From: Lepidodermella squamata
Lineage: Eukaryota; Animalia; Gastrotricha
Assembly (NCBI GenBank): GCA_047495785.1
Contig: JBLDXI010000033.1
Coordinates: forward strand, 2,170,001-2,234,000
Direction: 5' to 3'
DNA length: 64,000 nucleotides
Shown in pieces: positions 39,676-63,662 of this stretch (positions within the stretch are counted from its first letter, which is position 1; every line of letters starts with the position of its first letter). The position numbers were made by a program, and so were the translations under genes. Below the pieces are notes generated by a model that did not search any database, was not told where the DNA came from, and was given only the letters and a program-made list of their open reading frames with translations.

Positions 39676-41023
39676 ATGACATTGGAGTGCTCCGTTTGTT
39701 TCGAGCTTTCAGATGACAACTACAAATTGAAAACATGTGGCTGCGAGTTTTGTAAACGCTGCGTTCTGAGTTACATCGGAGTTCGTGTCCAATCCGGTGA
39801 CGTGCTAGACATACCATGCTTGTCTTCTCAATGTAAGCAGCCTTTCACACATGAAGAGGTCGACGAGCTTCTTCGAGAATCTTCATCTACCGATATCCAT
39901 GAGCGCTATTTGCGATACAAAGGCAATCGAGATGTAGAACGCGATCCAAATCGGACCTTTTGCCCTAATCCATTATGCTCATGTATATGCGAAATCCCAC
40001 CTAGCCCTGCGTCTAACACCCAAACCTCAGTAACGGTTGATCAGAGCACAAATCCAGATTCGAGCAGTAATAGCCAGCAACCGCCCGTGATAAATCCACC
40101 CTCATTTGCGAGTCCTCGCGCTGTGAAATGTCAAAATTGTGGCTTTCAATTCTGCTCGCTCTGTCACGCATCATGGCTACCTGACCAGGTTGGCCAGTTG
40201 AATAGCAATCAACCGGGGACAATCGACAGTCCGCAAGCTCATCACCCTTTCAGAACCCCATCTTCAACTGCAGCTGCGGCAGCTGCTGCCATTCCTATGG
40301 GCAATTTGTTATTCGGTGCCAATGAGCAATCGCAACAGACTCAAGCATCCCCACACCAATGTGAAGTAACCTACGTAGTAAATCGGCAAAGATGGAATCT
40401 GCTATCTAGGTAATTTTGCAATGCCAGATTTATCGATGTAGATTTTAATCTTTGTTTACTTCAGAATTGGCATAGAAGTAGCGGCTGATGACGTCATGAT
40501 AAAGCGGTGTCCGTGCTGCGGCATCCCGGTGGAGCGCGGACCCGGTTGCGCTCAGATGCTGTGCCTGAACTGCCATCATACGTTCTGCTGGTACTGCTTG
40601 ACCGTATTGGATGGCGACGTGTTTCTGCGGCACTACGAGTCAGGCGTGTGTCGCGCACGTCTCGGCCACACGCCCGGCGATCTGCGCCGCCACCGTGCCC
40701 GCGTCGCCATGGCTCTCACATGCTGCGGCGTCGTCGCCGTCCTCCTCCTACCTGTCATAATCGTCTGTTCACCGTGCATTCTCACCTGCGTCTGCTGCGT
40801 GCGCTCGCTCATAAACAACAGCGCAAGAGGCGCGGCCGGGGCCAATAACGCGAACGCTACGACGAATCGACGGCAGCAGTTCACAAATTTGGAAGGCATT
40901 GCAGCTCAACCGCCGCCTGACTATAGTCAAGTCGTTACTAACAGTAACAATCAGGGCAACCGCACTTCGTCGTCGAATTCCAACAATAACTTGAACATCC
41001 ACCAAAATAACTCGCCAGTGTGA
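39676..41023 (+). CDS. RNF144: RBR E3 ubiquitin ligase RNF144-like with a C-terminal TM helix; intron 40410-40464
   Basis: RING1, IBR and RING2 IKRCPCCGIPVERGPGCAQMLCLNCHHTFCWYCL followed by HYESGVCRARLGH and a Cys-rich TM, as in RNF144. Confidence 0.9.
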
Positions 41024-42169: not shown

Positions 42170-44604
42170 TCAGGTTCTCAACTGGTAGTAGACAATACCC
42201 TGAAATAACATGGTCAATTAGTGAGAGATTCGTTGTTTTCAGAGTTTAAACTTACGTGAGGGCTAGGTTCGGGATTGACGCATTTGTTGGACTTGATGTA
42301 GCACTTGTTCTCGAACTGATCGAAGGCGAAACCGAGACACTTGGTCGTATGGATGCAGCGAAGAGCGCACTCGCCAAGGGGCGCCACTACCTGTTCGATG
42401 ACACTTCCACGGCAGTTGCCAGCTAGTGCGGTGTAGTACTCGAGCACCTTCTCCTTGGGCGGCTCGCCACTCGGACGGATCGCGTGGTGGTTTGCGCGGT
42501 TTTCACCGTACTGGCTCGCGGTGGAGACTAGCGATCGTCGCGCCATTAGCGAGGACTGGTCGTGGCCAAGGCTGTTGCGGGCGCGCAGTTTTTTCTGCTG
42601 CGCGTTGTGCATCTGCTGGAGGGCGGCGCCGAGGCTAGGCGAGGTTTTGTTTAAATTGTTTTGCAAAAAATCGTAAAAAGCAAACAATTTTTCAGACTTG
42701 GACGAAGGCGGCGTAGCATCGGCGCCATCATCGCTGCCGCCGTCACCCTGGGTCGCTGCTACGTTGTTCGAAGATCCGCTCGAAGACGGGGTTTTATCCA
42801 TCAAAGCGCCGATTTTCCGGTAATAGACCCATGCAGAGCTCGTGATGGGGGTGGAGCATGACTCAGCTCGCAGGTAGCACTCATGAGGAGAAGACACGTA
42901 CAGGTTCACTGAGAAGCCGGAGCAGTCAACACGGCGGTGGCACTTCCTCGCGCATTCGTAGACGTTCAGTTCGTAGACTTTGTTGTCCAACAATGGGCTC
43001 TGGCAATCGCCCTCAAGCCGTTCGTAGCCGTGGAGGACCTTGCGTTCTGAAGAACGAGATTCGCGGCTGTGACGAGGGTAACCGTTGTGGTGGTTGTGGC
43101 GCCTGTTACTATTCATCATGAATCGCTCCTCAGAAGACGTATAGCCTTTGTAGTGAGCAGGGCTCATAATTGGAGGCATCATTGGCATCGGCGCGGGAGG
43201 AGGTGCTCCGCCGCCGTAGGGTGACGAGCCACCTAGAGCTGCGAAGGGCGAACCACCTTGAGCAGCAGCGGCTGCTGCGGCGAGGATGCTAGGAGGGGCC
43301 CCAGCCATTCCGGCGAGCCCAGCTCCTCCCATCGCTCCCCCCATCATACCAGGTGGGCTATTGGCTCGACTAAGAATGAAGTTGAGCAGACTCAGAATGT
43401 CAGGCATGCCAGATGAACCGAAAACTGAAAAATATATAATTAAAATTATAAGAACTTTTATTGAATTATGAACCAACGTTTCTTGAAGACCTGCTTCTGT
43501 TGGCAGTGGCCGATGAAGCGGCAAATGTGGTGGTTCTGGTCGTAGGAAAACGCCTGGCAACCGGCATCGGCGAGGCAGTATTGCGCGCAAGTGAAAACAG
43601 TCGAAGTCTTGAAATGCTTGTCGCTATCGCAGATCTGATCGTAAGTCGACAGGTAGGCACGTAAAATCTCGGTATTCGGCTCGTCACTGATGCGAATTGG
43701 CGGCAAGTCGAATGGTTGAACGTCATAGCCGGATGGGGGCATGGGTGGGGGCGGATAAGGTGCGTGGACTTTGTGAGCCCTTGGTTGCTTTTCTGCGGAC
43801 AAGAAGATGTTTAATTGTAAATTTTAGGGAATTTGTTAAGCCTGAAAAACTCAAGACATACTGCGGCAAAAACCGAAGCGCGACGAGTAAGTCGGAAAGC
43901 GGCATTCAGTGTGTTGCAGGGTGCATGAAAATGGCTTCGCCTTGCCGTCGGCGTCCTTGTCCCAGCTGAAGCCGAGACATTCAGCATTCAGGTTGCATTG
44001 CGATGCGCAGCGCTCGCGGTTGAACGCCAGTGGGTTGCCGATGGGTGAGTCCGCACAGTAGCCGATGATTTCTTCGTAGCGAGGCGGGCAAGCGTCGCTC
44101 GGTGGGCGGGCATCTCCCGCCGACGATCTGTCATCGGCGCCATGCCAGCGCGATTTAGGGTGGGCGATGGATGATTGACTAGGCGATGGCCAGATGCCCT
44201 CTTCGTTGTGGTTAGAATTCGGTCCGGTCGGCATGGCGTCGAGCGGTGCGGAGGCGGAGGGTGGCGCAGCTACGTCATCGCTCGTCTGGATATTACTCTT
44301 GTCGCCTTGTTGTAATTGCTGCTGCTGATGATGAGCTGCCTCGAGCAGGCGCGACAGGTCCCGCTCGGCTTCCTCCGCGACTTTCACTTTAGTGAGGTCA
44401 TCACAAAATCCAGTTAGAGCAAAGCAAAAGAAATATCACAGACAGGAATCACAGGTAAAAGCAAAACAAAAAATAAATCAAATGTTAGTCGCGGTGAGCA
44501 AAATTTAATTAGCATCAAAGTTGCAACTCACTGTTGTACGGCTTAGCGCCTTTTAGGATGACTAGGCCTAGAACGACCAGGGGAATGAGGCTAAATCTAG
44601 CCAT
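42170..44604 (-). CDS. Secreted PAN/apple-repeat protein P1 (4 PAN-like domains), 5 exons
   Basis: Signal exon MARFSLIPLVVLGLVILKGAKPYN (44532-44604); repeats of G-x-C...C-A-x-x-C...C-x-G-F...C-x-L...C...YYRK; last exon GIVYYQLRT*. Missed as one gene by the ORF track. Confidence 0.85.
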
Positions 44605-45886
44605 GAAGATCGCTCAGAAAAATAAACTAACGCGAAAGTTCTCTATTCCCAACTTTTCGCCAAGTTGAAATCACGCTAAATGTCAGGTGGAATCCTTGTT
44701 GGCCCCGAAATTCGGCGCTATTTAAACGTGCCCTAGCAACCGGCCTCTCAGTAAATGGTGGTGATTTTAAGGCAGCGCAAATATGGACATCGCCTATGTG
44801 CGGTTGCAAAGTAGCGGTGGTTTGTTGTTTGCTTCGTTTTTGACGCGACCCGTTAAAAGGCGTTATTTCAGGCTAAAAATTTCCGTTGGTAAATATCGGC
44901 ACGGGCAAATTTTTAGCGGCCAATTTACGGCCCGAGCAGGACGAAGCAAAATTTAGCTGATATTTATTTAAATTTTTAGCCCACTGTTGATGGAATGCGT
45001 ACATGCGGTGGAGCCTGGCCGGGCAGGTGTTTGATCTAGCTGCTATTAGTCGACGCGTGTGTATGCTCGGCTTTTTATTCTGACTCGTAATTTTATTTGC
45101 GCAATTTTTAAAGATGGCAACTTTTGCCCGCTACCGACGCCCAAATAATGCGACATTTAGCGAACAAACAAGCGCTAGAAAAACCACGTCTTCAAAAACT
45201 ACCTGAGAAAAATTTGGTATATACATGCTTTAAGGTAGCTACAGTTTGTTTTTCCACAGAGTGCTCTAATAAAAAGATTCGTCCTCATGGAAACAGATCC
45301 TTCGTCTTCATAATAATATCAACATCGGTAACGATTTTTCTGCCTCTCCGTGACTACGGTACATTTTTCTTTTAATAACATATTTTCCCACTTTGCAGAT
45401 TTCTTTAACCTGAAAATAATTCGTCGAAGCACTCGTTAGATTTTAGAAAATAATTTTTTTTACTTATTTTCGGCTCAATATTAAAGGATCCGTACATTTT
45501 CCAAAAATAATGTCAGCCTCAAATGAATGTCAGGGTAAAGGTATTTCAATTTTAGGACCACCTGAATGCTTATCCGTGAGCCCGTAAACTTTGGTCGCTA
45601 GGTCGACCATTCGAAAATAATAAGAATGCCATGGTTTTTAAATTCGACAAAATTAGTTTACGGCTTCGCGAACACTCGTATCCGAACTTAGGCAACGCGA
45701 GGTCAAACGTGATCAACAACTACCAGGGAAACTCCAACTTCAAGCTTGCCTAATGCTAGAATCACTTCGACTGTTGGCATTGAGAAAAGTACTGGTCCCG
45801 TAAGAAACCTGATCGTTTGTGCTTTGACTCATCCATCTTATTTTCAAGCCGCTCCACCAGATCTGTCACGAAAAAATCGATTGATA

Positions 45887-46022
45887 CAGTGGAACCCCGA
45901 TTCCCGGTAGTTTTGCTTGTAATTGCCCTCTGCGGGTCGTTCCTAAGTCGTTCCTAAATATTTACATATCGCGATTTCCCGTCAGACGGGAAACCAGGTG
46001 ACGGGAAATCGGGGTTCCACTG
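45887..46022. mobile_element. TA-flanked MITE, pogo/Tigger-like
   Basis: TIRs CAGTGGAACCCCGATT / AATCGGGGTTCCACTG; TA at 45885-86 and 46023-24; 136 bp. Confidence 0.88.
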
Positions 46023-47180
46023 TATTTATGCTGATAATGAGGGAACGGTTTAAAAACAAATGCAAGCATTAATTCAGAGAACTATATTTCAGCCGTTCTC
46101 CAGATCTGTTATTGAAAAACCAATCATTAATTAGAGGCTACTCCATTAAGTAATTATAGCTAGCCCAAGGGGAAAGCGACAGCAATTCGTCCCCAGTTCA
46201 TTAACCTCGTAAAATTTTTGAGTTCAAGTTCAATAGGGAAATGTCAAAACTGTGGAAAACCAACAATATCATTACGAAGAATTTGCATAATTGTACAAAA
46301 TTTTTATTGTTTCTTTTTTTATCATTATCATTAATGTTTGTCGCCTCGGCGCTATAATGTTAGGAGGTGAGAAGATGAGCATGATGAGAAAATCGATCTG
46401 GCGAGAATACTGCGGATTCAGCATTGAGAACGACGCCCATTATTCCGGATATCGTCATTCTGATTGAGCACAAGAGTTGACTAAGAAGGTCTGCTCTTCT
46501 AATGGAAGAGCTTGTGATAACAACGCCCGATTTCTTCGATCTACCTTAATATCAACGACGATTATATTTACGTGAGAAATTATAGGTTAACTGCGCGTTT
46601 TTAAATCTAGGAGAAAACTGAAAACAACTCGAAATTCGAGTTATCAATTAATACTGAGTCGCAATTTTTTTGATCAAGGTAGCGCCAGGTGAGGTGACAG
46701 TATACAAGAACTAGTTAATAATAAAATTACATTGTAACAACAATACAAATACAAAAACGAGAAGAGAGAGAGAGACAGAGAAATAAAACAGAAATGCGAT
46801 CGAGACAAAGAAAGAAAATTTGTTTATAACACAAAGTAGTAAAAGAAGATAGTTTCTCTACTTTTTTCATCATCAAATCAGTCAATAATTTAAACGAGAG
46901 TGCAGATGATGGGGGATGACACATGGAGGCTGGAGATGAGCAACACAATTTTCTTCCTTCGCATTTAACAATCACAACAAACTAAATAATAGAATAATTT
47001 CCGCCAGCAATATCGCGTCGGTTTTTTTTCTGTTTTTATTCACTCGTTCACAACCGCAAAAAGGTGAGGAAATAGGGAGTCTCCATGTATTAGAGCTTCA
47101 AATGTATATCAACAAACAATCATACACAACCGGCATTTGTAAAAAGTGGCATGGCTTCGATGCTTTCAGCCGCCCTCTGC

Positions 47181-50100
47181 TTACAACTTGGTGTAATAGA
47201 TGAATTTGTGCGGGTTCGGGTTCTTGCAAGGGCCGTCCTTCAACACGCATTTCGAGTCTTCTTGAGCGAACGCGAAGCCTGAAATAAAATTAATCAAATA
47301 TTAATAAAATTATTAAAATTAAATTAGATTAATTTTAATTAAATTTTTTAACAATTTTATACCTGCACAAGTCGGTGCCGAATTACACCTGTCAGCACAC
47401 GAGTCGATGGTCATAGGCTGGAAAATTTCCTGCAACACGTGACCCGGGCAGTTGCCGTCCAAGCTCTTGTAGCCGATTATACTCCTCGACCCGGCCGACG
47501 AAGCCGCCCCGGTTTCAACGTGCTGACTCACGGGTTCCGGCGCCGGCTCCGGGTGGCTGTAAGTCTCCGACTGCCGCGCCGCCGAGGACGGTCCATTGGG
47601 AGCGCAGTGTTGTTCGCATTCTTCCAGACTCAAGAAATTGTTGTTGTTACCCTCACAGCCGCCGAATACAAACTCCTCGCACTGGTTCGAGTTGTAGAAC
47701 CAGCGGCGCAGGTTGGCCTTGCACGGTCCGGTGTCTGGCGGCAGGTTGCAACGCGGCGCTAGGTGGCCACCAGCTGCCCGGGCAGGCTGCGACTCGAACG
47801 ACTCGTGCCGTTGCGTCGTGAACTGCTCAGCCAACCGGCGGAAAATCTGCGCGCCGTTGCAATCGAACGAGAAGATCAACCGGCACATGTTGCCATTGCC
47901 GATGTACGAATAGCCCTGGCAGTTCGAGTCGACCAAGCAGCGATCCGCGCACTGCGCCTTGTTATCGACCCAGAACTCGCCGGTCTGGTCCAGGCACATG
48001 CCGTCGTGAACGACAAAGGCAGTCGGGGGAGGGTTGCTGCCGCCGCTGCTCGAACCGGCCGTCATGTCCTCGCCGCGGTTGTAGAACCTGAACGCCGAGT
48101 CTTCCCTTGGGTGCCAGCAGCGTTGCGCGTTGAGTTGGCACTCGAGTGGCGGCTGGTCTCGCATGATTTGAACGCTGAAGCCGAGGCATTTCGGGTGGTT
48201 GTAGCACTCAGTGGCACAGGCTTCTTTATTCGGAACCGGCAGCGATACGATGGGAGTCCCCTCGCAGTTGCCCTCGACGGCGTTGAAATGGCTCTGGAAA
48301 ATTCGCCGGCTCTCTTCGGATGGCGCCGGGTTGTTGCGACCCGCCGACCTCGTCTCCGCGCCGCCGTACTCATTCGACGCCGGCGCGCTGGGCACTGCGG
48401 AATCCAGCCGGCGGTAGAACGTCCACATCGAGTGCGGCCCGGACATTTCGCAATCGCGCAGTTTTCCGATGCATTTGAACGGACTGCCTGTCGCGGTTTT
48501 GTCCCAGGTGAAACCGCCGCATTTCGGGTTGCTCATACACTCCTTCGCGCATTGCTCGAGGCTGAGGTCGGCGTAGGACGAGTCGATGCTACCGCCCTTA
48601 CAGTGTTCGTTTGTATCTTCGAAGTGAGACAGCGGCGATGACGATTCAGCGACGTGTTGGCGAGCAGGCTCGGGCGCGGGTTCAGCCGGGGCTGGTTCGT
48701 AGGGTGTCTCAACCGGGGCTGAACTGCTGTGTTGCTTCAACTTGCGGTAAAACGTCCAAACACTGTGCGGGCCGATGTTCTCGCAGCCCTTTGCCTTTAG
48801 TATGCAGAGATGAGGCGCGGATGTTCGCGTGTGGTCAATCGTAAAGCCGATGCAACCAGGCCGGTTCCAGCACTCTCTCGCGCACTGCTGCAGGTCCCAG
48901 TTTTCGGGGACGTCACTCAACGACGCACCCTTGCAATGAGCCCCTGTGTTTTCGTAGTTTTCAGATGCAAAGTCGCCGCCGCTGGGATGTGGCCGATGCG
49001 TCTCCTCGACTGGCGGCGGAGGCGGGTGGTACGGCTCTTCGATGATCGGAGGTGCCGCTGGAGGTGCTTCAGTCACGTCATAGCCGTTATTCTCGTTACT
49101 GTTCGTTTCAATCATCACGTGACTTTCTTCCGGATCTAACGCTGTTGGCTGCTCGATGGGTTCCGCTGGCAATTGAGGCGGAACGAACGGATGGGTCGAT
49201 ACCTCAATTATTTTCGCTGGAGTTTCAGTCACAGTCGATGAGGTTGACGCCGATGTGGCTGGCTCGGTTTTCACCGAAGTTTCAACCGAGCTCGTCAGAT
49301 TAACGACCGGGACTGTCGGGAACGTCGGGAACGTGACAACCGGCACGGCCACGGTTGGTGGTGGCGATGATTCATTCTTGAAAACCTCAACTTCACTTGT
49401 GTTCAAGTAAGTTACTTCCAGGCTTTCGCTGCCGTTGAACCCGAGCATGGTTTCGTTAGCGAGAATGGTGGCCGAAGTCACGCCAAGATCGGGCAGGTCG
49501 GTTTCGGAACTGGTTTCCAATCCCCCTATTAGGCCGGTTCCGTCAATTTCCGTCTCAGGGCCCTGAGGCGGCACTTGCGGGAACAACGGGAAAGGCGGCA
49601 GGGTGAGTGGGGTCGGACCACCTGGGTACAGCGGCACAGCCCATGGAGGCAACGAGCCAGTTCCAAGATTGCCAAGACTTTGAGGACCTAATGACACAAA
49701 GAAAAGATATCAACAATTGAAAATATAAAAAAAATATTCAAATTAAAAAATCAATTTCAAATTGTTCTTCTAGATTTATAAATTATAGAAAATTGAATTA
49801 AATTTGACAAACATTAATTTAATGAATAAAAAATATTGACAAAATGTTTGCTGCATAGAATTTTTCTAAATTATCCTAAATTAGAAAAGAAATAATATTT
49901 ACCCATGAGTGCGCTCTTTTTGTTGTAAGTGTACCAGTTGCGGCCAACATCGACAGCGCGTGACAGCGAGCAGGTCGACGTGCGAAGCAAGCATCGGCTG
50001 TTATCGGCGTTGTAAGCGCCGGACAAGCAGTTCGAAAGACGCTGGCAAAGCGTTAAACAATCGGCAATTGACACGGGAGCAAGCGGATTCGCAGGATGGA

Positions 50101-51176
50101 TGAAGTCTTCGGCGCAATAGCCGTGCACGAGTTCAAAATCACTTGGAATGTCTGAAAATTATTGGGCATTAAAAAATTCATTTATTTTCAGTAAATTTCA
50201 ACGAACCTTCACAACGATCACTGCAAATCGGGCCGATTGTCACAGGAGTCACGTAATGCTTGCCTATAGTATCTGTTACTTCGCTATACTCACCGCCCGA
50301 ATACGGGAAGTGGAAGAAAAGACACCTTTGCATGTCGGTAAATAGGTCAACGTCCTGAAAACCAGGTCAGAATTTTTTAAGAAAAAACGAACAATTTTTT
50401 CCGTTACATACCTGATCGTAATCGCCGGTATCGGCTCGCCGTACGAAGTAGAAAATTGTCATATTCGACTCTTGTTTCCATTCCCAGTTGATGATGTTGT
50501 CAACGTGGTCTTTCACTGGGGACGTGTAGCCGCTGATCCACCGGTCGGACACGTACAACCGCTGGCCGCTTGTGTCCATGCCGGCGATGATGGCATCTGA
50601 ATGCGGCATGTTGCGATCGGCCGAAAAGCCGACACCTAGCCACCGATTAGGGCCCAGCGCCAGGCTGGCGATTAAGAAATGAACGACGATGCCGCCGGTT
50701 GACAACTGTTCACTCCTCCACTTGCCGAGAAATATGCATGTGGATGAATCACAGCCGGGCGGAAACCGGAAGGTGCACGGAGAGGGGTTCGCAAAAATAT
50801 CTGATGAGCGTATATTTATTAAGGAGGGTGACCAATGGTTATTATTTGTTTATTACCTTCAAGAGGGCCGTATAACTCCTCGGCCATCGCTTCGATTCCA
50901 ACGTACCAATGAACTGCGAAAACAGTCAAAGAGACGAATTTAAGATAGGCCAGAAATTGCCTCATCTTGTCATGGCAGAAATGTAATGACTACTGGCTAA
51001 GTAAGTGTTTGATCAAGTATGAGGTATATAGCTGCGATGACGCGGCTAATTAAAAATGTATTAAAAATAATAGTAAAATTTGCAAACAAACTTGGCGCCG
51101 TTATCGCTGAAATAGCCGGCGTGACAACGGCTAGCATTATCAGTAGAAGCTGGGTCATCCTTGTCGTTGTTGTCAT
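47181..51176 (-). CDS. Secreted mosaic protein P2: DOMON, PAN, Pro/Thr-rich linker, 4 PAN, Kunitz, PAN
   Basis: Signal MTQLLLIMLAVVTPAISA; DOMON WLGVGFSADRNMPHSDAII...VSDRW...FVRRADTGD; Kunitz CNLPPDTGPCKANLRRWFYN...FVFGGCEGNNNNFLSLEECEQHC; six PAN-like repeats; stop at 47183-47181. Confidence 0.85.
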
Positions 51177-54100
51177 AGTTGCATCTGGGGGGCACGTTTT
51201 GTTCGAGTTTGGCGGCAATAAAATCTTATTTAATTATTATTAATAGTAATAATAATAATAAAGCCGGCCTGCTATTGCAACAGGTAGGCTGTTAGAGCTA
51301 TTTGACGCAGACCCTACAATTCAACAATGGAAATGATTAAAATTTTAGACATCGTATGACAAAGAGTAAATATGTGCGGCAAAGAGATTTAGCGATAAGA
51401 AGACGACGAACGAGAGAGTGAGTAAGTAGGTAAGTTCTTGTTTGAACTCACTCGTGTTCGATGAACTTGCGGCGCACGTTCGGCGTGAACTCGCAGCGCA
51501 TGAACTGGCTGAGGCTGGCTTGAGGACAAGATTAAAGCACGTGTCTTTGGCGGCGAGTGATGAGAAAGCAGAAGCTCTTTATGTCTTGGTCGGCTAATGA
51601 GACGGCAGTAGTAATAACAGTATCGCTAATCTTTCATTACAAGAGAGAGAACGACGAGAGAGAGAGTAAGCTGGAGTCCAGTGGAGAAAATTTTGCAAAA
51701 CCGTTGTAAGGTCACGTTCGTAAACTCTCGCCGAGCTCAAACCACCACACAGCGTTGTTTTGCTCTTGTTTCGATAACCTTAACACTTTCGCCTGCTGTT
51801 GGAAGATGCGACAGCGTAAAGACGTGCGTAGAAACAACAAAAACCAGGCATTTCCGCGCTTTCTGATTTTGTTGATGTGCTTTTGTCTAGCTGCAAAGCA
51901 AGCATATTTAGTCTGACAAGGAGTGACACATGTGACACACGGTGAAAGCGTCAAACAACGCACAAGTACACGGCCATCACATCAAATCAAAAGAGCAATA
52001 AGGGCAGGGCGAGTGCCTTGGGTTGGCAGTTGCAATAACTTGCCAAAAATTGAGCATTCGAAAATTTAGCAGTAGACAACGGCAGAATAGCACGCGATAA
52101 AGTCCTATACACAGGCAACTCTACCGGACTAACCGACACCTATGTTCAAATACAGCCGTGAATGCGCTCTTTCGGTATTGAATGATTTCATTCACACAAG
52201 TGGCGTGTTACGAACGCGAATGTTCGGTGTGAATGACCGAGTTACGCAACGGCGCCACAGGGTGTTTACACAAGTCGCGCGACAACCATCACTGCTGGCG
52301 GCGCTCAAAATACCTGTGTAGGCATTGACGAATTGGGCCGTAATTTAGCGTAATCAAGGCAATAAATTGCCGAGAAAAATCATCTCGATAAAAAGTCTGT
52401 GTCCATTTTCTGCAACCTTAAATGTTGATTGTTATTGTCTCGCTGGCCGCGCGCGAACAGGGTGACAGACTAGTCGCGAATGTTCTCTTTAGAATATTAG
52501 CAACAACCTATTTCAAACATGCCAATCACGTTGATGGCAGGCTAATAATTCTAGGCCGAGCGAGAAAATCGAAAGTGTAAACACACGCGCGGCGTGTGGC
52601 ACTATTTCCGGCTTTTAGGCGCCAGGTGAAAATAAATATTATTACCTATCATCTCATTGTTGTCGATTGCTTATTTACTCAGCGCGCTCTTTCTCTTTCT
52701 GCTCTAGTCGAAAACTGTATGCTGCTGCTGAAAGGGTCAACAAATTAGCTCTGATATAATTGTTTCAAAGAAGGAAGTGTTATCGAATCAATATCCGCGC
52801 TTTTCACGACTCTCTGCGACATAAACTTCGCAGAAGGCAATCTTACTTCCATGACGAACATTTTTCAGAGATAAAATTCTATAAAATTCCAAGATGCAAA
52901 CAGAGTGTTAGAAGTTTTTATGAAGCCATCTGCCAGTAAATTATACGAATGAGTACCTAAAAATCATCGATATATACAAAAAGTCCGGTCCTACCTAAAC
53001 TCAAAATGATCATTATTATTGTGATAAAATTTTCTAAAATTTACAAGCTGCTTTCAGATCTAGAATCATCCGAGAATATGCAAAATTTTCAAGGTGCAAT
53101 AATGTTTTTTTTCGCAAGCAACATGTCAATCGCAGATCGCGGAAATTTTCGCGCAGTGTAGTCAAATTTTTAGACCAATCCAATGATAAACCTGTGTCTG
53201 CTTGAGTTTTGGGTAATAATAAAAATTTGTCATTTTCCAGGGTCTTACTGTTAAAGTAGCCAAATTTGCCCATAGCGAAACCAAAATTTCGATAATTAAT
53301 TCGCAAAAAATGCCGTTTGAAAGGTTAAGACAATCTAGATGATTAAAAATCCGAATCCAAATAAATGAGAATAAAAATATGCTTGGTTTTCTGAATAAGG
53401 CCTGATCATCACTCTGAGAACGAGGTGTAATCTCAATTTTTAATAGTTCTCACATTTTGTGCCTGGTTATTATCTTTGGTAGAGTGAAAAAGTATGCTGA
53501 AATCTGTGCAACTTATTTCCCGACGGTTTGCCACCCATTCAAATTTATGGACACAAGTTAGTTAAAAGGGGCAGGGCAGTTGCACAAAAATAAGAAGCGG
53601 GGGGTTTATTTCGGGTATTACGGTAGACGGTAGTTGACTGAAACTAGCAACGGAAACTGTACGCTAGAATATTATAACACTTTAGATTATATTATTAGGC
53701 AATTTCCACAAAAAAAGCTGAGAAGACCTGTTGAAAATGTTCCAAAGTTGACAGGTAGCGGTTATAAAGATTCAGAAAGATTCAGATATGAACACTTCCG
53801 TAATACATATGTTATTATAGCCCTAGTGGTTTCTTATACAGTAACCGTTCAAGGCAAAATCTTGAATTCGAAAATTCGGCCGGAGAGGCATTGCATAGGG
53901 AACCTTGAAAGCAGAAATTCTGACCAGAAATGCTGAAATTATTATATTAGATAGTTGGACTAAAATGTTTACTCAGGTCAACGGGCCACATGCCGCCCTA
54001 CGTCACAGGTGGTGTGTAAGTTTTTGCCAACGCCTGCAAATTTATCGAGATATATCTTTCAAGTTCATGCCCTTTTTAAATAATTGAAATAAAAGATAGG

Positions 54101-56973
54101 TAACTTTGATCAACTTTCATCGTCCGAATAATAGAAATTCGTTCATTTTTATGTATTTTTCTTGTATTTTATATTGGATAACAGCGTGACAAGCTTGAGA
54201 TTTGTTTTTTTGTTGTTGTTGCGATTCTCGCAAAACAAAGCCGCATCTGCTTCGCCGTGAATCCTCGCTATGCGAAAGTTGACAAGCTTAACTGCCAAAC
54301 AAAATAGCGGAAAATCCATAACATCTTCGAATTTTCCCAAAAAATACTAAACACCGAACCCGCGAGCTGTAAAACCAACATCAACACTCTACATTGCGCA
54401 AGAAAAGTCCGGTCCTCGGTCCCTGGGTTTACATGTAATTTAAGAAAAATGGAACTTTTTACATATATCCTTGAAGTATACTAGATCTGAGAGGAGTTTG
54501 CAAATCGGTATAAGCAATGAAGCAAATCGCCTTATAAAGCTGTCTTCTCGATTTTCGCCAGGAACATAGACGTTTTTGCGCAGTCTATGTATATTTCAGT
54601 GTCACATGGAGTATTTTTGAGGACGGCCTCGTGAATCTGAGCAAGTGATCAGCTCTCTTAAAGGATTGAATACTGAACATGGGGAACGTTCATTGGGATC
54701 GTTTGTATGTAGCGCAAAAAATAATATTTTTCGTTTTTATTTCTGCTTTTTTATCTAATAATGATGAGAAATTGAGATTTATGGAGAGGTAAATCTGTCG
54801 GCGAAATCGGCGCTTTGCAGTTCGTTTGGCCTTCCGTAAGAAAAAATCGACAATATTGCTGTGCGCAACTGACAGCTTCGTTCGGAAATAAAACACTCTC
54901 GAGTTACCTTTTTACAGACTTAACTCACTCTAACACCCGAAACTACGTGAAAGCCATAAGTTTTCCGTAGAGTTCTTCATGGCGAAGGAGTTAACCATTT
55001 CACGCTGTTTGTCAACACAAAGGATGAGATGTCTCTCGCATAGTACAAGCAAGACGAAAGTTTGAAGTAATGAAACTTTGAGTGTTTGGTTTTAGGAAGT
55101 GTCAATACAGCCAGGCGCCAGTTTACCGAAGCGAGACCGTGTTGTCACAAATCTGGCGGGCCGGCGTTTGTTGTCTGCCGGCCGTTTCACACACCCACAG
55201 ATTATGGGAATTTGCTACCTGGCGTCTCGCCGAGGTCATAAAAGTCATTAGAGGTGTTGCACGCCAGCTTTGCAGCCGCAAATTTACTGCCATTTGACAC
55301 AAAAAGCCACTTCCTTGTCAGCCCAACTTGACCAATTTCAAGGCTTTCTACAACAATAGATATTTTGTTTTTTCGGCGCTTGGGTATGACTTGTTAGGCG
55401 ATAACAAAAATCGCCAATGCTATGTGTGTTTAACAGGCCTAACGAGGTGTTTGCCAGTGTTTTTTAATGAGGCACCATCCAGCTGGGTATAAATGCGCCG
55501 GGTCGCGGCCAAAAATGCATCACTCCATCGCATTTGCATCCGCCAGCAACAACCATCCTCACAATATTTCCTAAACTATGACTCACCGTTTCGCTTTTTA
55601 ATTATTGCCAGCAATTATAATTGCGCGAACAATTTTTTCGATAATTTTGTTTGCATCGTTCGCGTCATGTTTACACCTTAAGTGGTTGCCAAATATTCGC
55701 GCGCCGATAATTATTTGTATGATTAACATTTTCCCATAATCATTTTTATCATTAACAATTTTTGCCCTGCGGCACGTTGAACGCGATTTCAAGCAGGAGT
55801 CATCGTCTTGTTAGACACCCTGCGCCTTACATTTAGCGTATTAAGGTGTATCGCACTTGTATTTAAAACGCGTGATATTAAGCGGCTTGTCTTGTGCTAG
55901 CGTCGGATCCTCTGCTATAATAGGTGCCAAGACGGCACGTCCGCGACGCCTAAAAACTAGGTAAACTGCTCATTAAAAAGGTGTTGATTGTAGTAGCAGA
56001 GGCGACTACTTTAAGACGAGTTTGGGATTATATTATTAGCCAGCGCTAGAGCAAACAAAAAAGGCTTGCTGGTATGTGCGCGGCTTTTGCGCCTGCGCTC
56101 ATTATTTTCCTCATTAAATTTAGCGGCTATTCTTGCGCACATTATTGTATCATTGCGGGGCGGTGACTAAAACGCTAACCGACAATTGACAGCGCACAAA
56201 AACGCAATTCATTCCTCAATTTTTCAAATTTTTATTCACTCGCGAATTTCTTGTGACAATTTCCTGCTAAATCGAAATTTAAATAGTTGCTTTACCTTAC
56301 CTGAATTTTAGCAAGTAGCTATCGAAAGCCGAGATTTTTTGGTTAAAGATGAACACGTATTGGCAGCCATCTGGCTATAGAGTTTTCAAAAGCCTAGATC
56401 GGCCGCACTTTGACCCGCGCAAAATGCCTGCGCTATTGCGTTGCGCAATTAACTGTTTGCGCGTTCGCTCATCGTTTCAATCTCATCGCGCGCATCCTCA
56501 AAATTTTCATATATCCCCAAGCCAACTGCAATTTAGAAAACAGGTAAACAGGTTATTTACGACCTGTTATGTTACGTAAAGCAAACACCCAAACTAATGA
56601 CCAGCTCATTACATTAAAATACGGCGAGTAAAATCGAGAGCTGAGATAGCGCATCATCATCGTCAAACACTGACCAGTTTCGCGAGCGCGTGTGAATTTT
56701 AGAATGGACTTCCGTAGCGCGCAAACAATTTGAAGCAGAGAGGTCAAAACACTTTAAACGTTGCATCACACACCAGTTGGGTTATTTGCGCCTAATAATT
56801 GATAGCAACGAAAAATAGTTTCGAACAAGCAACGTCACGTTTGCGTTTTCTAATAGAGCCCGACGTCATCATCCGGCGTGTTTTTAACGTTATCATCATC
56901 GTTTTTTCGCTCCATATAGCTCATTATTTTAATTTTCGTTTTGGCAAGAACTAGCCAATTCAACTCTACAATA

Positions 56974-59900
56974 ATGGCCGGTTTTCGTCGAATGGTCCTC
57001 GGTGTGGCCATTCTGTCTATCGTTGTCATCAAGCAGGCTAAGACCTACAACGGTAAGAGTTAGTCACCCTATCTTTACTAAAACAACTCGGTTACTTAGT
57101 TAGACAACTCTTTACTTTGAGGAGATTAGTTTCAAAAACATTAGGCTGGTTACTTTCATAAAAAGTTGCTTTTACTGCTTTTACTGACACGCTGCTTTAT
57201 AGCAAATTTAGAAGTCATCGCGCCAACTTCTTCCGCCTTCCTATCTTCGCCGGCTTCGTCGGCTTCTTCGTCGGGCGTTAAGGCGGCGGGAAAGAACAGC
57301 AACAACCTTGATGACGCAGCGGCCGTCTACAACCAGAACATGGCATTCGCCGAGTGGCAGTCGCGCTTCATCAAAATGCAAGGCAACTGCCCAGGCTCGA
57401 TTCTCCGCGAAATAGAATCTGCGTCGTTCGAACACTGCGCCCACGAGTGTTGGAACGACGGCGACTGTTACGGCTTCGCTTACCGGCACTACCACAACCA
57501 AGACGCGATATCGACGCTGGCCAACTGCGTGCTGAAACACACGACGTGCGACGGAACGCTGCAGCTATCCAAGTGGATGTACTACCGAAAAGGTCTTTAC
57601 GTCACGCCCTTTCCGCCCTTTTATTATTAGGAGCATAATTTTCCGGGGTCCCTCTCGCCTTTCTATTCTGTCTAAATTATTATTTTTTGAACGTCGGGCA
57701 GTTGATATTGTGACCCGCTTTAGTGCCATAGACCAAAGAGCTGTACTTTCGGACGCTACTGTCTTTAGCTTTTTTCCTAACATTAGTCGTTTTTTCTGAT
57801 TTCAAAAAAATCAAGATTTCAAATTAGCTGAATTTTCGAATCAAAACTAAATTTTTTGCCAGTGTCCGAAATTACGGCTTTGATCATGCTAGCTAGTTCC
57901 CAGCTTTGCCTTGATTGTCATATTTGTGTCAACTCTTTCTCTTTATTCTTCCTCTGCCTGTTCTCGAACTTCGAACGTCGTGTATAGTGAGGCAAGAGAA
58001 GCCGGCAATGAAAGTTAACGCTACCGCGCCGAGTTTCCAGCAACTAGTCAACGCATCGTCGACTGTCTCACCGATTTCGCCGTCTAGCAGCAGCGCCGCC
58101 GTGCCGCAACCGACGCAACCCACGCTGTTGTTGCCGCTGAAGCAAGAAATGGAGCAGAAATTGTTCGGTTCGCCTCTTAATCTCTTGGCATTTTATTATT
58201 TTTGGTTTATTTTCCAATCTCACCACGTGGAACTGTTTGTGGCCTAACTTTCTGTTTCTTTTCTGTTTCCCCCCACCCTCCCACACTTAATGACTCACCA
58301 CGCACAGTACCGACACCCGCTTCTGACCCTTCGCTGAAACAGGGCGCGGTCTCGCCGCCGTTCAGCGAGGAACAGCGCGTTGTTCACTCGAACCGCCGCC
58401 CGTCCGCCTTCGCGTCGGTAAGCGCCGAAATGCGCTCGAATTTTCTGGACGAGGGCACCGCCGCCGCATCTCGCAGCGCCGGTCGAACGTCGGACGCTCA
58501 GCAGAAACTGTCGAGTGAGGATGAGCTCATCAATAATGAGGAGCAAACTCGTAATAGTGAATCGTCGTGGGTCGACTGGCTTGTAGACCGGCCTCAGCCG
58601 ACGCGAAGAAGTTCACAAGGTTTTGTCATCGTTCATGTCTCTTGTTCTCAACGCCCCACCGCACGCTTTTTCGGTCGATGTTGTACGCTATTTTAGACGT
58701 ATAACCGCACCCAGCACGCTCTATCGGCATTTTCCGCTTATGGGTTTCATGCGGTTATTTTTTCCGACTTTTTTCGGATTTTTCATATGCGCAGAAAAAT
58801 GCAAGATTTCCTTATTAATTTTTAACAGTTGGCCCGATGGGGTTGGAATACAACCAGAAAAACACGGCTCAACACGATGAATCGAACATTCGATCGTCTC
58901 GCGACAAGAACAATGACTACGTCGGCTACTTCAAGGAGATGAACGGCAACTGCCCGGGCGGTTCGATGGGTAGCCCGTTGTCACTGTCTCTGAGCGAATG
59001 CGCCAAGGAGTGCTACGACCGTGCCGGCGATTGCCAGGGCTTCTCGTACCGCGACCCGAACGGCTGCGTCCTTAAACGCGTCGCTTGCGCCGAACCCGAG
59101 CAATCACCCACCGGATTCGTTTTCTATCGAAGTGAATTTAATTTAGCAATTTTGCCACGGTTTTAATTTTAATTTCAATTCAGAGCTTGAAACTATCCCC
59201 GCCGGTCAATCGCCCGCCATTCCTCGCCAAGCCCAGCAGCAGCAACAGGCCGAAAACGACGACGAAGCTCTGTACAACACTTGGCAGCAAAACGAACGCA
59301 TGAATGGCCCTGCCGCTAGTCACCAAGGCCTTACCCAGCAGTCCGAAAATGTCAGCAACCAGAATCAGGCCGGTCAAAAGCCACACGCCAAGTCTCGCTC
59401 CGGCCCAGCTGGTCGCGATAGCCACGAAGGTCCGTCAAGCTGCCCTGCCCGTTACGAGGAAATCGTCGGATACTGCTCAGACTCGCCCATTGGAAACGCC
59501 CTCAGCATGGACAAGTTCCGCTGCGCCGATCAATGCAACCTGAACCCTGACTGCCTCGGCTTCACCTGGGACAAGACTGGCAATGGTAAGGAAAAGCCGT
59601 TCTCGTGCACCCTGCAACACACCGAATGCCGCTTCCCGATCTACTCTGAGACCTACAACTTCTACCGCAAAAAGATCGTCCACCACCACAAGCCCGCCTT
59701 CGTCCCGCCACCACCCCCACCACCACCAGCTGCCCCAGTTTTGCCGCCTCTGCCCAAGCTCGAGGAACCGAACCCTGAAGTCTTGCGCGCCTTCCTGTCC
59801 ACCTACGACCAGATTTGCGATAGCGACAAACAGTTCAAGACCACGACCGTTTTCACCTGCGCCCAGTACTGCCTCGCCGATGCCAGCTGCCAGGCCTTCT

Positions 59901-62189
59901 CCTACGACACCCAGAGCCACTTCTGCCGATTCATTGGACACTGCTCGCAGCAACAAGTCTTCAAGAAACGTAAGTTCCCTCCAGTTTATAATTGCCTCAA
60001 GATTCCACCTTGAAAATTTTAGTCTTTGGCTCCGCTGGTTTGCCCGACTTCCTTGGCCTTCTCCACCTGCTGCTCGGTGGTCTTGCCGGCAACCGCTTCG
60101 GTATGGCTCCCCCAGCTATGGGCCACCATCACCACCACGGCATGCAAGGTATGCAAGGTATGCAAGGTATGCCAGGCATGCCCGGACTCGCTGGTATGGC
60201 TGGTCTTCCCGGTTTCGGCCCTGGCCCAATGTACCCCGGCTTCCCTCTGGCCCCGCAGCGCAAGGAATACTTCACCTCATCGGAAGAGCGTATGGTGAGC
60301 CGCAGCCGGCATCACGCCCATGACCGTGACCGTTCCAAGTCGACTGAGCGCCGCCTGTTGCACGGCTTCGAACGCCTCGACGGTGACTGCCAAGGTGCCC
60401 TTCTTGACAACAAGGTCTACGAACTGGACATTTTCGACTGCGCCAAGAAGTGCTACCGCCGGCCCGACTGTGCTGGTTTCTCGTTCAACCTCTACGTTTC
60501 ATCGCCTCAAGAGTGCTACCTGAAGGCTGAAAGTTGCTCGGCCCCGATGCAATCCAGCGTGTGGGTGTTCTACCGCAAAAGTGAGTTCCTTACCCTGACG
60601 GCCTGTAGCCATGACCCCGCCCGCCGGTTTTTTAATTTTTGTAGTTGAATTCAGTAGTCTTTTTGATGAACTCCTTGTTAAATATGTGTTTTTTTGCTTT
60701 TTTCTCGATCGTCTAACCCAAATTTCCCTGAAATTCTCTCTCTGATCACTAAAAACAAACAACTAAAACCCCAAAGCCCCCAAAGTGCACTCATCGGAAG
60801 CTGGCGATCGCCGCCGTGGCGGATCGCGCCGTCCGCCCGTGCCGCCACAAGCCGGGCCCGGCAACAGCACGGTGCCAACGCCCATCAACTGGCGCTCGCG
60901 CCGGCCCAACCCACCACCGCATCTACCGCCATTTTCTGTCGATGTCGTAACAGGTACTAAACATCATATGATTGCGTCGGTTCGAGGCGCTAGCCACGAC
61001 GCTGCCATGCCGCAAGACTCGCAGGCCGTCGACGCGCTAACGGCTCCAACTAGTGCTAGCGAGGCCGCAGCTGACGACGGACTAGCCGCGTCCGGGCCCT
61101 CGGCGTCGAGCTTATTCGACGCTATAGATGACTCGCAGTTGTCGCGAGCTAGTAGCTCGAACACTAACAAGAAAACAGCCGCTGCTGCTTCCTCGCCGCC
61201 TAACCAACCCTCGGCTAGACACGCTAGATTGAGTCAGCTGCGCAACCAGCCGCAACGCGAGCAGTTCATGGTGCGAACCCGATCGATCAAGCCCGCGTCC
61301 GGCAAGGCCAAGCAGACCGTCAAAGCCCGCGCTCGCTCGACGCAGCCGACACTACCGAGTACTACACCTTTATACAATTACTATTCCGTGTCGGTTTCCA
61401 CCTCTACTCTACCTTCTGTACCTTCTACTACCACGAGTCAGCAGTTTTATTTAATTTGATAATATTAACGCTTGTTTTTTCTGTGTCTTGTTATTTATTG
61501 CTGCCGCTGCTGCTTTGTTCATCGTCGCACCAAACCTAGTTGGTGAACTAGTAGAAATGCCCGTCATGCCGCCTGCTACTAACTCTTGCTTTGAGAACAT
61601 CGGCGACCCGTCGTCGGAGCGGCCGTTCAAGGCCAACGCCGCGTCGTCGCTCGAAGCCGACGACCCAAAGCCGCTGCCTGGGCCTGTTGTAATACAGGCC
61701 AAGAGCAGCGCAACTAGTCCCACACCGCTTTCAGGTAGACATGCTTCTTAGCCCAGCTTTGGTCTTGGTGTTAGTTTCAACGTTGTCGATCTCTGACGAC
61801 TGAAAATCGGCTCTTGTTTTTTATCAATGTTGCGATTTGAATTCACAGAGGATCGCGCCCTCGAGTACTACACCCCGGTCGCCGGAAACTGCCCTGGTAA
61901 CGTCATCGAATCCCTCGATATTACTCTCCTCAAGTGCGCTGCTCGGTGCCTGCGCCACAACGAATGCCTCGGCTTCGCGTTCGATCAAGTAATTTTTTAT
62001 TAATTAAACACAACCCGATGTAACCTCCCGTTTATCACCATCAGGCCGCCACCCGATGCCATATCAAATCGATCAAGTGTGATCGTCCTGAAGCTAGCGC
62101 ACCTGTAAGTTGATGAAATTCGATGATGAAACATTCATTCAAATTGTTCCCAATGTTAGGGTGTCGTTTACTATCAACGCCGAATGTAA
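56974..62189 (+). CDS. Secreted PAN/apple-repeat protein P3 (6 PAN-like domains), inverted paralog of P1
   Basis: Signal exon MAGFRRMVLGVAILSIVVIKQAKTYN; shares CP.RYEEI.GYC, STYDQICDSDK, LLDNKVYEL and LEYYT..AGNC with P1; last exon GVVYYQRRM* (62160-62189). Confidence 0.85.
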
Positions 62190-63200: not shown

Positions 63201-63662
63201 CTAGAAATTGAAGGAGCCGGTTAATAGCAACAGGCTAGCAACAGCGACTATGAGTTTGATGTTTGAAACTTTAGTAAAGGAGGCATTGCAAAAATCTGTT
63301 TGGCAGCACCGGCATTCGTTGATTATTTCGAAATTTTTCTTGAAATTGCGCTCAGCGTCCCGGCGTAAACTTCGGCATGACTCATCGCACAGCCAAATGG
63401 ATGACGAAGCTGAGAAGCATGTGTACAGCGGCAACGGGGGTGGTAGAGCGGCTGATGAATGCGACGGGCTTCGGCTGGTTCGGACAACGCGGCAAACGCT
63501 ACAACCGCGCATTTCCAACTTGTGAAAAGGACCCTGTTGGTTGGTGCCAATGTAGCACATAATGCCGCTGTGTTTGGTTGGAGATGCGGGGCTAAGGTGG
63601 CTGAAAATCAGCGCCGAAAGGAGTAGGATATCGCAAATCCCTCTAGATTTTAGCTTGCTCAT
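63201..63662 (-). CDS. Ly6/uPAR three-finger protein (quiver/sleepless-like), probably GPI-anchored
   Basis: Signal peptide, IMCY start, ten Cys ending CRCCQTDFCN, hydrophobic C-terminal tail; single exon. Confidence 0.82.
   Translation of the reverse strand: MSKLKSRGICDILLLSALIFSHLSPASPTKHSGIMCYIGTNQQGPFHKLEMRGCSVCRVVRTSRSPSHSSAALPPPLPLYTCFSASSSIWLCDESCRSLRRDAERNFKKNFEIINECRCCQTDFCNASFTKVSNIKLIVAVASLLLLTGSFNF

Follow-up and report, generated by a model that had tools for sequence, protein, structure and literature searches.

We analysed a 64,000-nt stretch of the genome of the gastrotrich Lepidodermella squamata (contig JBLDXI010000033.1, positions 2,170,001 to 2,234,000), hereafter the window, which is G000:C33:2170001-2234000 of the genome that was searched (121.2 Mb, 151 contigs). 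Genes are dense and introns short in this stretch of animal DNA, which contains three adjoining genes, P1, P2 and P3, whose products are built of repeated PAN/apple modules. A core-motif scan assigned four modules to P1 (minus strand), six to P2 (minus strand) and six to P3 (plus strand). A first-pass annotation, made from the sequence alone, had proposed three secreted PAN genes at this locus, and the positions, strands and module counts that it gave were borne out. The gene models draw on open frames, GT/AG splice sites and intron phase, and on the paralogs and orthologs with which they are colinear. Exons were submitted singly to database and fold searches, and the joined models were used for frame, composition, hydropathy and the ratio of nonsynonymous to synonymous substitution rates (dN/dS) only.

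The 16 modules of the three genes were aligned with seven modules from other loci. All 16 align with six invariant or near-invariant Cys residues; across the 23 modules, four of the Cys columns show no variation and the other two are conserved at 90% or more. Taken singly, 21 of the 23 modules match Pfam PAN_1 at E <= 0.01, and whole exons reach PAN_1 scores of 50.0 bits (the large exon of P2) and 36.8 bits (the exon with modules 3 and 4 of P3) against a cut-off of 21.4. The fifth module of P3 (PAN 5; 60367..60579, plus strand) served as the representative for fold prediction. AlphaFold2, supplied with the 23-module alignment, modelled it with a predicted local distance difference test (pLDDT) score of 92.4 and a predicted template modelling score of 0.80. 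In VIA-align the model matched the plasminogen PAN domain (Z 9.3), the N domain of HGF (Z 9.0) and apple domain 5 of TgMIC4 (Z 8.7), the best superpositions having a root-mean-square deviation (rmsd) of ~1.9-2.0 over 65-66 of 71 residues. The model also superposes on the apple domains of factor XI and on the Sarcocystis lectin SML-2, and its top Foldseek matches were all PAN/apple.

Other structural searches of P3 gave less. The AlphaFold2 model of a two-module P3 exon, made with a 5-row alignment, was unusable (pLDDT 39.9), and phmmer of the P3 exon against the PDB returned marginal matches only, for example MIC4 at E 0.024. The description of about 16 six-Cys PAN-like modules given at first pass is nonetheless correct, because the PAN_1 matches, the conserved Cys columns and a predicted fold with Z of ~9 agree. 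Judged from sequence and the predicted fold together, the 16 modules are members of the PAN/apple superfamily (Pfam PAN_1, PAN_2 and PAN_4), in whose fold an antiparallel sheet packs against a central helix.

P1 and P3, an inverted pair of paralogs

The P1 gene (42214..44604, minus strand) has four exons and a 707-aa model with four PAN modules, supported by GT/AG sites, frame, colinearity with P3 and PAN_1 hits. Its signal exon (44604-44532) is followed by one exon for PAN A (44386-43862), one for PAN B (43792-43478) and a fourth (43424-42214) that encodes a Gly/Ala/Met/Pro-rich stretch, PAN C, a Ser-rich linker, PAN D and the stop codon. P3 (56974..62113, plus strand) is longer, with approximately 11 exons, a model of ~1207 aa and six PAN modules with Pfam PAN hits. 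The signal exon of P3 (56974-57052) precedes the PAN 1 exon (57203-57592), two linker exons (57988-58167 and 58308-58619), the PAN 2 exon (58829-59131) and exon 6 with PAN 3 and PAN 4 (about 59232-59969, acceptor ambiguous). The remainder of the gene comprises an exon with a Gly/Met/Pro/His-rich stretch and PAN 5 (60023-60580), two linker exons with ambiguous acceptors (exons 8 and 9; about 60777-61436 and about 61540-61734) and two exons that share PAN 6 (61849-61988 and 62045-62113), the last of which holds the stop codon.

P1 and P3 had been described as an inverted paralog pair with a common signal-exon design and four similar repeats, and this description stands. The signal exon terminates in AKPYN in P1 and in AKTYN in P3, each with a donor (GTGAGT or GTAAGA) one base into the next codon, that is, in phase 1. 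The alignment of P1 covers the C-terminal two thirds of P3 with its last four modules, and P3 has two more modules than P1. The four modules that are common to the two proteins show 53-78% amino-acid identity, and the exon DNA of the two genes forms inverted repeats of 73-80% identity. The further claim that several intron positions are shared held for only two of them: one intron follows the signal exon, and the other, a phase-1 intron of 53 nt, follows the second shared module. The remaining positions differ. No other close paralog of P1 and P3 was found in the genome. The DNA pattern for AKxYN plus donor occurs at three sites in the 121-Mb genome, two of which are P1 and P3; the third was rejected as a related gene, since it matches by chance on the antisense strand of a gene for a V-ATPase subunit.

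Across 335 codons of P1 and P3, the proportion of synonymous differences was 0.72, so that synonymous sites are saturated, whilst dN was 0.235 and dN/dS ~0.1. The saturated dS and the low dN/dS indicate that the duplication is old and that both copies are constrained. On these comparisons, P1 and P3 are ancient inverted paralogs.

The linkers of P1 and P3 are of low complexity, and are Ser/Pro-rich, His-rich or Gly/Met/Ala/Pro-rich. Directly 3' of the 53-nt intron, both paralogs keep an LFGS-x-G-x-PD-x-L-x-LL motif (P1 43424-43200, minus strand; P3 60023-60260, plus strand), and in both genes a Gly/Met/Ala/Pro-rich stretch comes after it. The stretch of P3 contains a His5 run and Gly-Met-Gln/Pro triplets that derive from a 9-nt repeat at 60142-60181, and a genome search with the Gly/Met/His-rich linker of P3 matched no gene besides P3. 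The stretch is reminiscent of Gly/Met-rich elastic proteins such as abductin. The paralogs also differ around one module: PAN A of P1 (44081-43866) and its ortholog have an extra flanking Cys pair, with one Cys before the module and one in an F-C-R after it, whereas PAN 3 of P3 (59450-59659) and its ortholog have the first flanking Cys only and read F-Y-R after the module. The lone flanking Cys at PAN 3 of P3 is possibly unpaired, and could make intermolecular disulfides.

P2, a mosaic of DOMON, PAN and Kunitz domains

P2 (47181..50965, minus strand; six exons, 1103-aa model, six PAN modules) has a different architecture, and contains two domains that were absent from the first-pass annotation, an N-terminal DOMON domain and a Kunitz domain. 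The order of parts is signal, DOMON, PAN, a Pro/Thr/Ser/Glu-rich stalk, four PAN modules, Kunitz and a last PAN. The signal exon (50965-50857) is followed by two exons for the DOMON domain (50800-50389 and 50325-50207; span 50207..50800) and by the PAN 1 exon (50151-49903). The large exon (49687-47363) encodes the stalk, PAN 2-5, the Kunitz domain and the first half of PAN 6, and the last exon (47278-47181) contributes the rest of PAN 6 and the stop codon, with a junction that reproduces the C-terminus of the P2 ortholog P0001. The last intron, of 84 nt, consists almost entirely of an AAATT-type simple repeat (47282-47347), and P0001 reads through this position without an intron.

The DOMON domain matches Pfam at 5.7e-15 (56.1 bits, cut-off 32.7), and the nearest ESM Atlas clusters to its exon were all DOMON proteins (score 0.96); the same search with the large exon was uninformative, with best scores of 0.75-0.76. 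An intronless paralog of the P2 head lies on contig C3 (L014:1102-1932:-; G000:C3:2295372-2296202). It encodes 276 aa with a signal, a DOMON domain (2.3e-20, 73.5 bits) and a PAN_1 domain (3.8e-6), and is colinear with three separate P2 exons. Because this gene carries signal, DOMON and PAN colinearly and without introns, we join the DOMON exons of P2 to its first PAN exon. The genome has no other paralog of the P2 head, and the ortholog of this gene in a related ENA assembly, P0021, is 75% identical. In the searches made, a DOMON-PAN fusion was found nowhere beyond P2, the C3 paralog and that assembly, and the full P2 architecture was found outside this genome only in the same assembly.

The stalk (residues 305-540, ~236 aa; 48957..49664, minus strand) is Pro/Thr/Ser/Glu-rich (P 18%, T 12%, S 9%) and mucin-like, with N-x-S/T sites. 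Gel-forming and tethered mucins have long, O-glycosylated Pro/Thr/Ser tandem repeats; in the stalk, Tandem Repeats Finder detected no DNA tandem array. Between PAN 5 and PAN 6 lies the Kunitz/BPTI domain (47604..47753, minus strand), which has all six Cys and matches Pfam Kunitz_BPTI at 1.2e-17 (64.3 bits, cut-off 21). In the PDB, phmmer matched it to TFPI, bikunin, BPTI and SmCI at 1e-16 to 1e-39. Its GPCKA loop, with Lys at the P1 position of the reactive site, aligns with BPTI and with domain 1 of TFPI, and for this reason the domain looks like an active trypsin-type protease inhibitor.

Orthologs, selection and the question of co-regulation

Word-index searches found one ortholog per gene in the one related ENA assembly: P0001 for P2 (49% identity to the large P2 exon), P0002 for P3 (84-88% over the PAN 3-4 exon) and P0003 for P1 (65% over exon 2, with the AKPYN end of the signal kept). 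Identity between P2 and P0001 is 60-88% in the PAN modules and ~90% in the Kunitz domain, compared with 28-41% in the linkers and 36% in the stalk. In the module tree the modules of P1 all pair with P0003 and those of P3 with P0002; the P1/P3 duplication is accordingly older than the divergence of the two species. The same longest-contig value, 27,115 bp, is given for P0001 and for the allelic members P0019 and P0020, and the three orthologs therefore probably lie on one syntenic contig. A HMMER search of 1.84 billion representative proteins returned two matches below 1e-10, both from the related ENA assembly, and the remaining 16 matches were generic PAN at 4e-9 or weaker. In current databases the family is thus restricted to its lineage, as had been supposed at first pass. 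We take the low dN/dS of P1 and P3 and the better conservation of modules than of linkers in P2 to indicate that the genes are functional; P1, P2 and P3 are genuine genes that are conserved and subject to selection.

The conservation bears on a less favourable account of the inverted pair, namely that it is an artefact of assembly or amplification, or a set of decaying pseudogenes. Multiple-displacement amplification can create inverted chimeras. DNA amplified in this way was the source of the published L. squamata assembly (122 Mb, 157 contigs; PMC11660948), a fact that lends the idea some initial plausibility. However, DNA identity between the arms is no higher than 73-80%, their introns differ, P3 has its two extra modules, and for each arm a separate ortholog exists in another assembly. 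No reading frame is interrupted, and dN/dS is ~0.1. An amplification chimera is ruled out by the divergence of the arms, with dS saturated, and by the separate orthologs, and we consider the account as a whole extremely improbable.

A second question is whether the three genes form a unit. P2 and P3 had been reported as standing head-to-head across the largest non-coding gap of the window. The arrangement was confirmed, but the reported size of 5.8 kb was not: from start codon to start codon, the spacer (50966..56973), which is low in G+C (0.39-0.45), measures 6,008 bp. Apart from four short matches the spacer is single-copy in the genome; it contains no Rfam family, and its longest open reading frames have no credible Pfam match. 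Local alignment of the 800 bp upstream of the three start codons gave scores of 13-14, against means of 12.0-12.5 and maxima of 16-17 for shuffled sequence.

PAN modules are abundant in this genome, with at least 142 PAN_1 matches among the 150 scored of 637 first-look candidates, and the Kunitz part of P2 has at least 70 matches. PAN and Kunitz modules often occur in local clusters, for example at C33:1.47-1.60 Mb, C25:0.76-0.86 Mb and C15:1.33 Mb. The P2 modules are no nearer to those of P1 and P3 than PAN modules of other loci are.

It could still be argued that the three genes are one co-regulated, lineage-specific secretory system of a single gland or epidermal cell type, producing for example adhesive-tube glue, scale cuticle or egg shell. 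The genes adjoin in a neighbourhood that is probably kept in the related species, all three products are putatively secreted PAN proteins, and the window has its largest gene-free stretch between the divergent P2 and P3. Yet the module tree does not group P2 with P1 and P3, the similarity of the upstream regions is not above shuffled controls, and 6 kb is too long a spacer for a compact bidirectional promoter. With PAN genes as frequent as they are here, side-by-side PAN lineages need no special explanation, and adjacency is weak evidence. The co-regulated system suggested in the first-pass annotation thus found no support in the modules, the upstream regions, the spacer, which has no recognisable element, or the abundance of PAN genes, and we regard it as unlikely.

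The cluster is bounded on the left by a gene for an RBR-type ligase (39676-41023) and on the right by two small secreted Cys-rich protein genes, at 63201-63662 (minus strand) in the window and at L011:218-703 (minus strand; G000:C33:2234218-2234703). At the C-terminus both small proteins have a hydrophobic tail and the motif CC-x-x-D-x-CN, and by eye they are reminiscent of Ly6/uPAR three-finger proteins; no Pfam match was found for either gene. The 10 kb beyond the right edge of the window contain no further PAN gene, and an Rfam scan of the whole window identified no family.

Putatively secreted products, their probable role and known relatives

Each of the three genes begins with a signal-like exon. 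In hydropathy analysis of the P1, P2 and P3 models, no hydrophobic segment was found other than the N-terminal signals, and there was no membrane anchor or glycosylphosphatidylinositol (GPI)-like tail. No exon scanned gave a Pfam match to a ZP domain, in agreement with the initial observation that neither a transmembrane segment nor a ZP domain could be seen. The Cys counts of the three models (26, 50 and 38) are even. The proposal that the products are extracellular is supported by the signal-like N-termini, by the disulfide-rich PAN, Kunitz and DOMON modules, and by the lack of a transmembrane segment or GPI-like tail; from their sequences, the products of P1, P2 and P3 look secreted and soluble.

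We favour the interpretation that the three proteins are secreted, multivalent components of an extracellular matrix or secretion, with a probability of roughly 0.6, and the three genes need not belong to one system. The products would be secreted, soluble, multi-module glycoproteins that act as multivalent parts of an apical matrix or cuticle, of mucus or of a gland product. The PAN modules could function as protein- or glycan-binding anchors and the low-complexity linkers as flexible spacers, whilst the Kunitz module of P2 could act as a local inhibitor of trypsin-like proteases. The old inverted duplication of P1 and P3, beside one of the many PAN genes of the genome, is explanation enough for the adjacency of the genes. 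In Caenorhabditis elegans, PAN domains bind LET-653 dynamically to the luminal apical matrix (PMC4970718). A matrix role of P1, P2 and P3 is likely on the evidence of their domains.

Several considerations weigh against this interpretation. The matrix role is deduced from domain content, and PAN modules are also present in soluble lectins and in immune or protease-recruiting proteins. The splice models of P1, P2 and P3 are based on GT/AG sites, frame and colinearity and three acceptors of P3 are ambiguous, signal peptides were assessed by eye and by hydropathy, and synteny in the related assembly was deduced from equal 27,115-bp values.

The presence of PAN modules in lectins raises the possibility that P1, P2 and P3 are soluble, lectin-type proteins of recognition or defence, directed at microbes or food or serving immunity, with the Kunitz domain of P2 acting against foreign proteases. 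The top Foldseek match of the P3 PAN 5 model was SML-2, a galactose-binding apple lectin, and the apple domains of MIC4 superpose with Z 8.6-8.7. In addition, PAN and Kunitz modules are much multiplied in the genome, which is common for recognition families. A likeness of fold to a lectin is, however, no proof of sugar binding, and the modules of P1 and P3 are old and under strong purifying selection, unlike fast-evolving recognition genes. The long low-complexity linkers and the mucin-like stalk are also more typical of matrix proteins. On balance, a role in recognition or defence seems quite improbable.

A more specific version of a structural role is that P1, P3 and P2 are proteins of a device particular to gastrotrichs, such as the cuticle with its scales, the egg shell or the material that the adhesive tubes secrete. 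Elastic or metal-bridged cohesion might then come from the Gly/Met-rich and His-rich linkers of P1 and P3 and multivalent cross-links from the PAN modules, whilst P2 might organise and protect the material. We consider this proposal speculative and doubtful. If it were true, the genes could be among the first such components to be named for the phylum. No molecular study of the cuticle, the scales or the duo-gland adhesive of gastrotrichs came up in our literature searches, and the conserved, selected PAN trio represents a set of concrete candidates in a phylum that now has a genome.

Compared with characterized proteins, P1, P2 and P3 are most readily set beside the PAN-domain apical-matrix proteins of ecdysozoans, which include NOAH-1, NOAH-2 and Drosophila NompA as well as LET-653. 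Proteins of this group are secreted and carry PAN/apple domains, as the products here are predicted to do. The domains are N-terminal, with a mucin-like region after them, and in LET-653 they tether the protein to the luminal matrix (PMC4970718). However, LET-653, the NOAH proteins and NompA have a C-terminal ZP domain and cleavage site, whereas P1, P2 and P3 have no ZP domain, and the sequence relationship is limited to the PAN module. The apicomplexan microneme proteins MIC4 (Toxoplasma) and SML-2 (Sarcocystis) offer a second comparison, as they are secreted arrays of six-Cys apple domains with few other domain types, like P1, P2 and P3. Their fold matches the P3 PAN 5 model with Z 7.7-8.7 and rmsd 2.0-2.3, at 12-22% sequence identity. 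These proteins belong to an unrelated lineage, have short linkers and are proven galactose-binding lectins; P1, P2 and P3 resemble them in the module and its predicted fold.

For the Kunitz domain of P2, the relevant counterparts are those of TFPI, bikunin and collagen VI alpha-3, with which it shares six Cys and a BPTI-like GPCKA loop. Unlike these, the P2 domain is a single module between PAN modules, behind a DOMON head. Secreted PAN-repeat proteins are ordinary and this genome contains hundreds of PAN modules, and the locus is not surprising for that reason: P1, P2 and P3 are best described as lineage-restricted members of a familiar kind of secreted protein. More unusual is the architecture of P2, in which the DOMON-PAN head is followed by a stalk and a PAN array, with a Kunitz domain that looks active.

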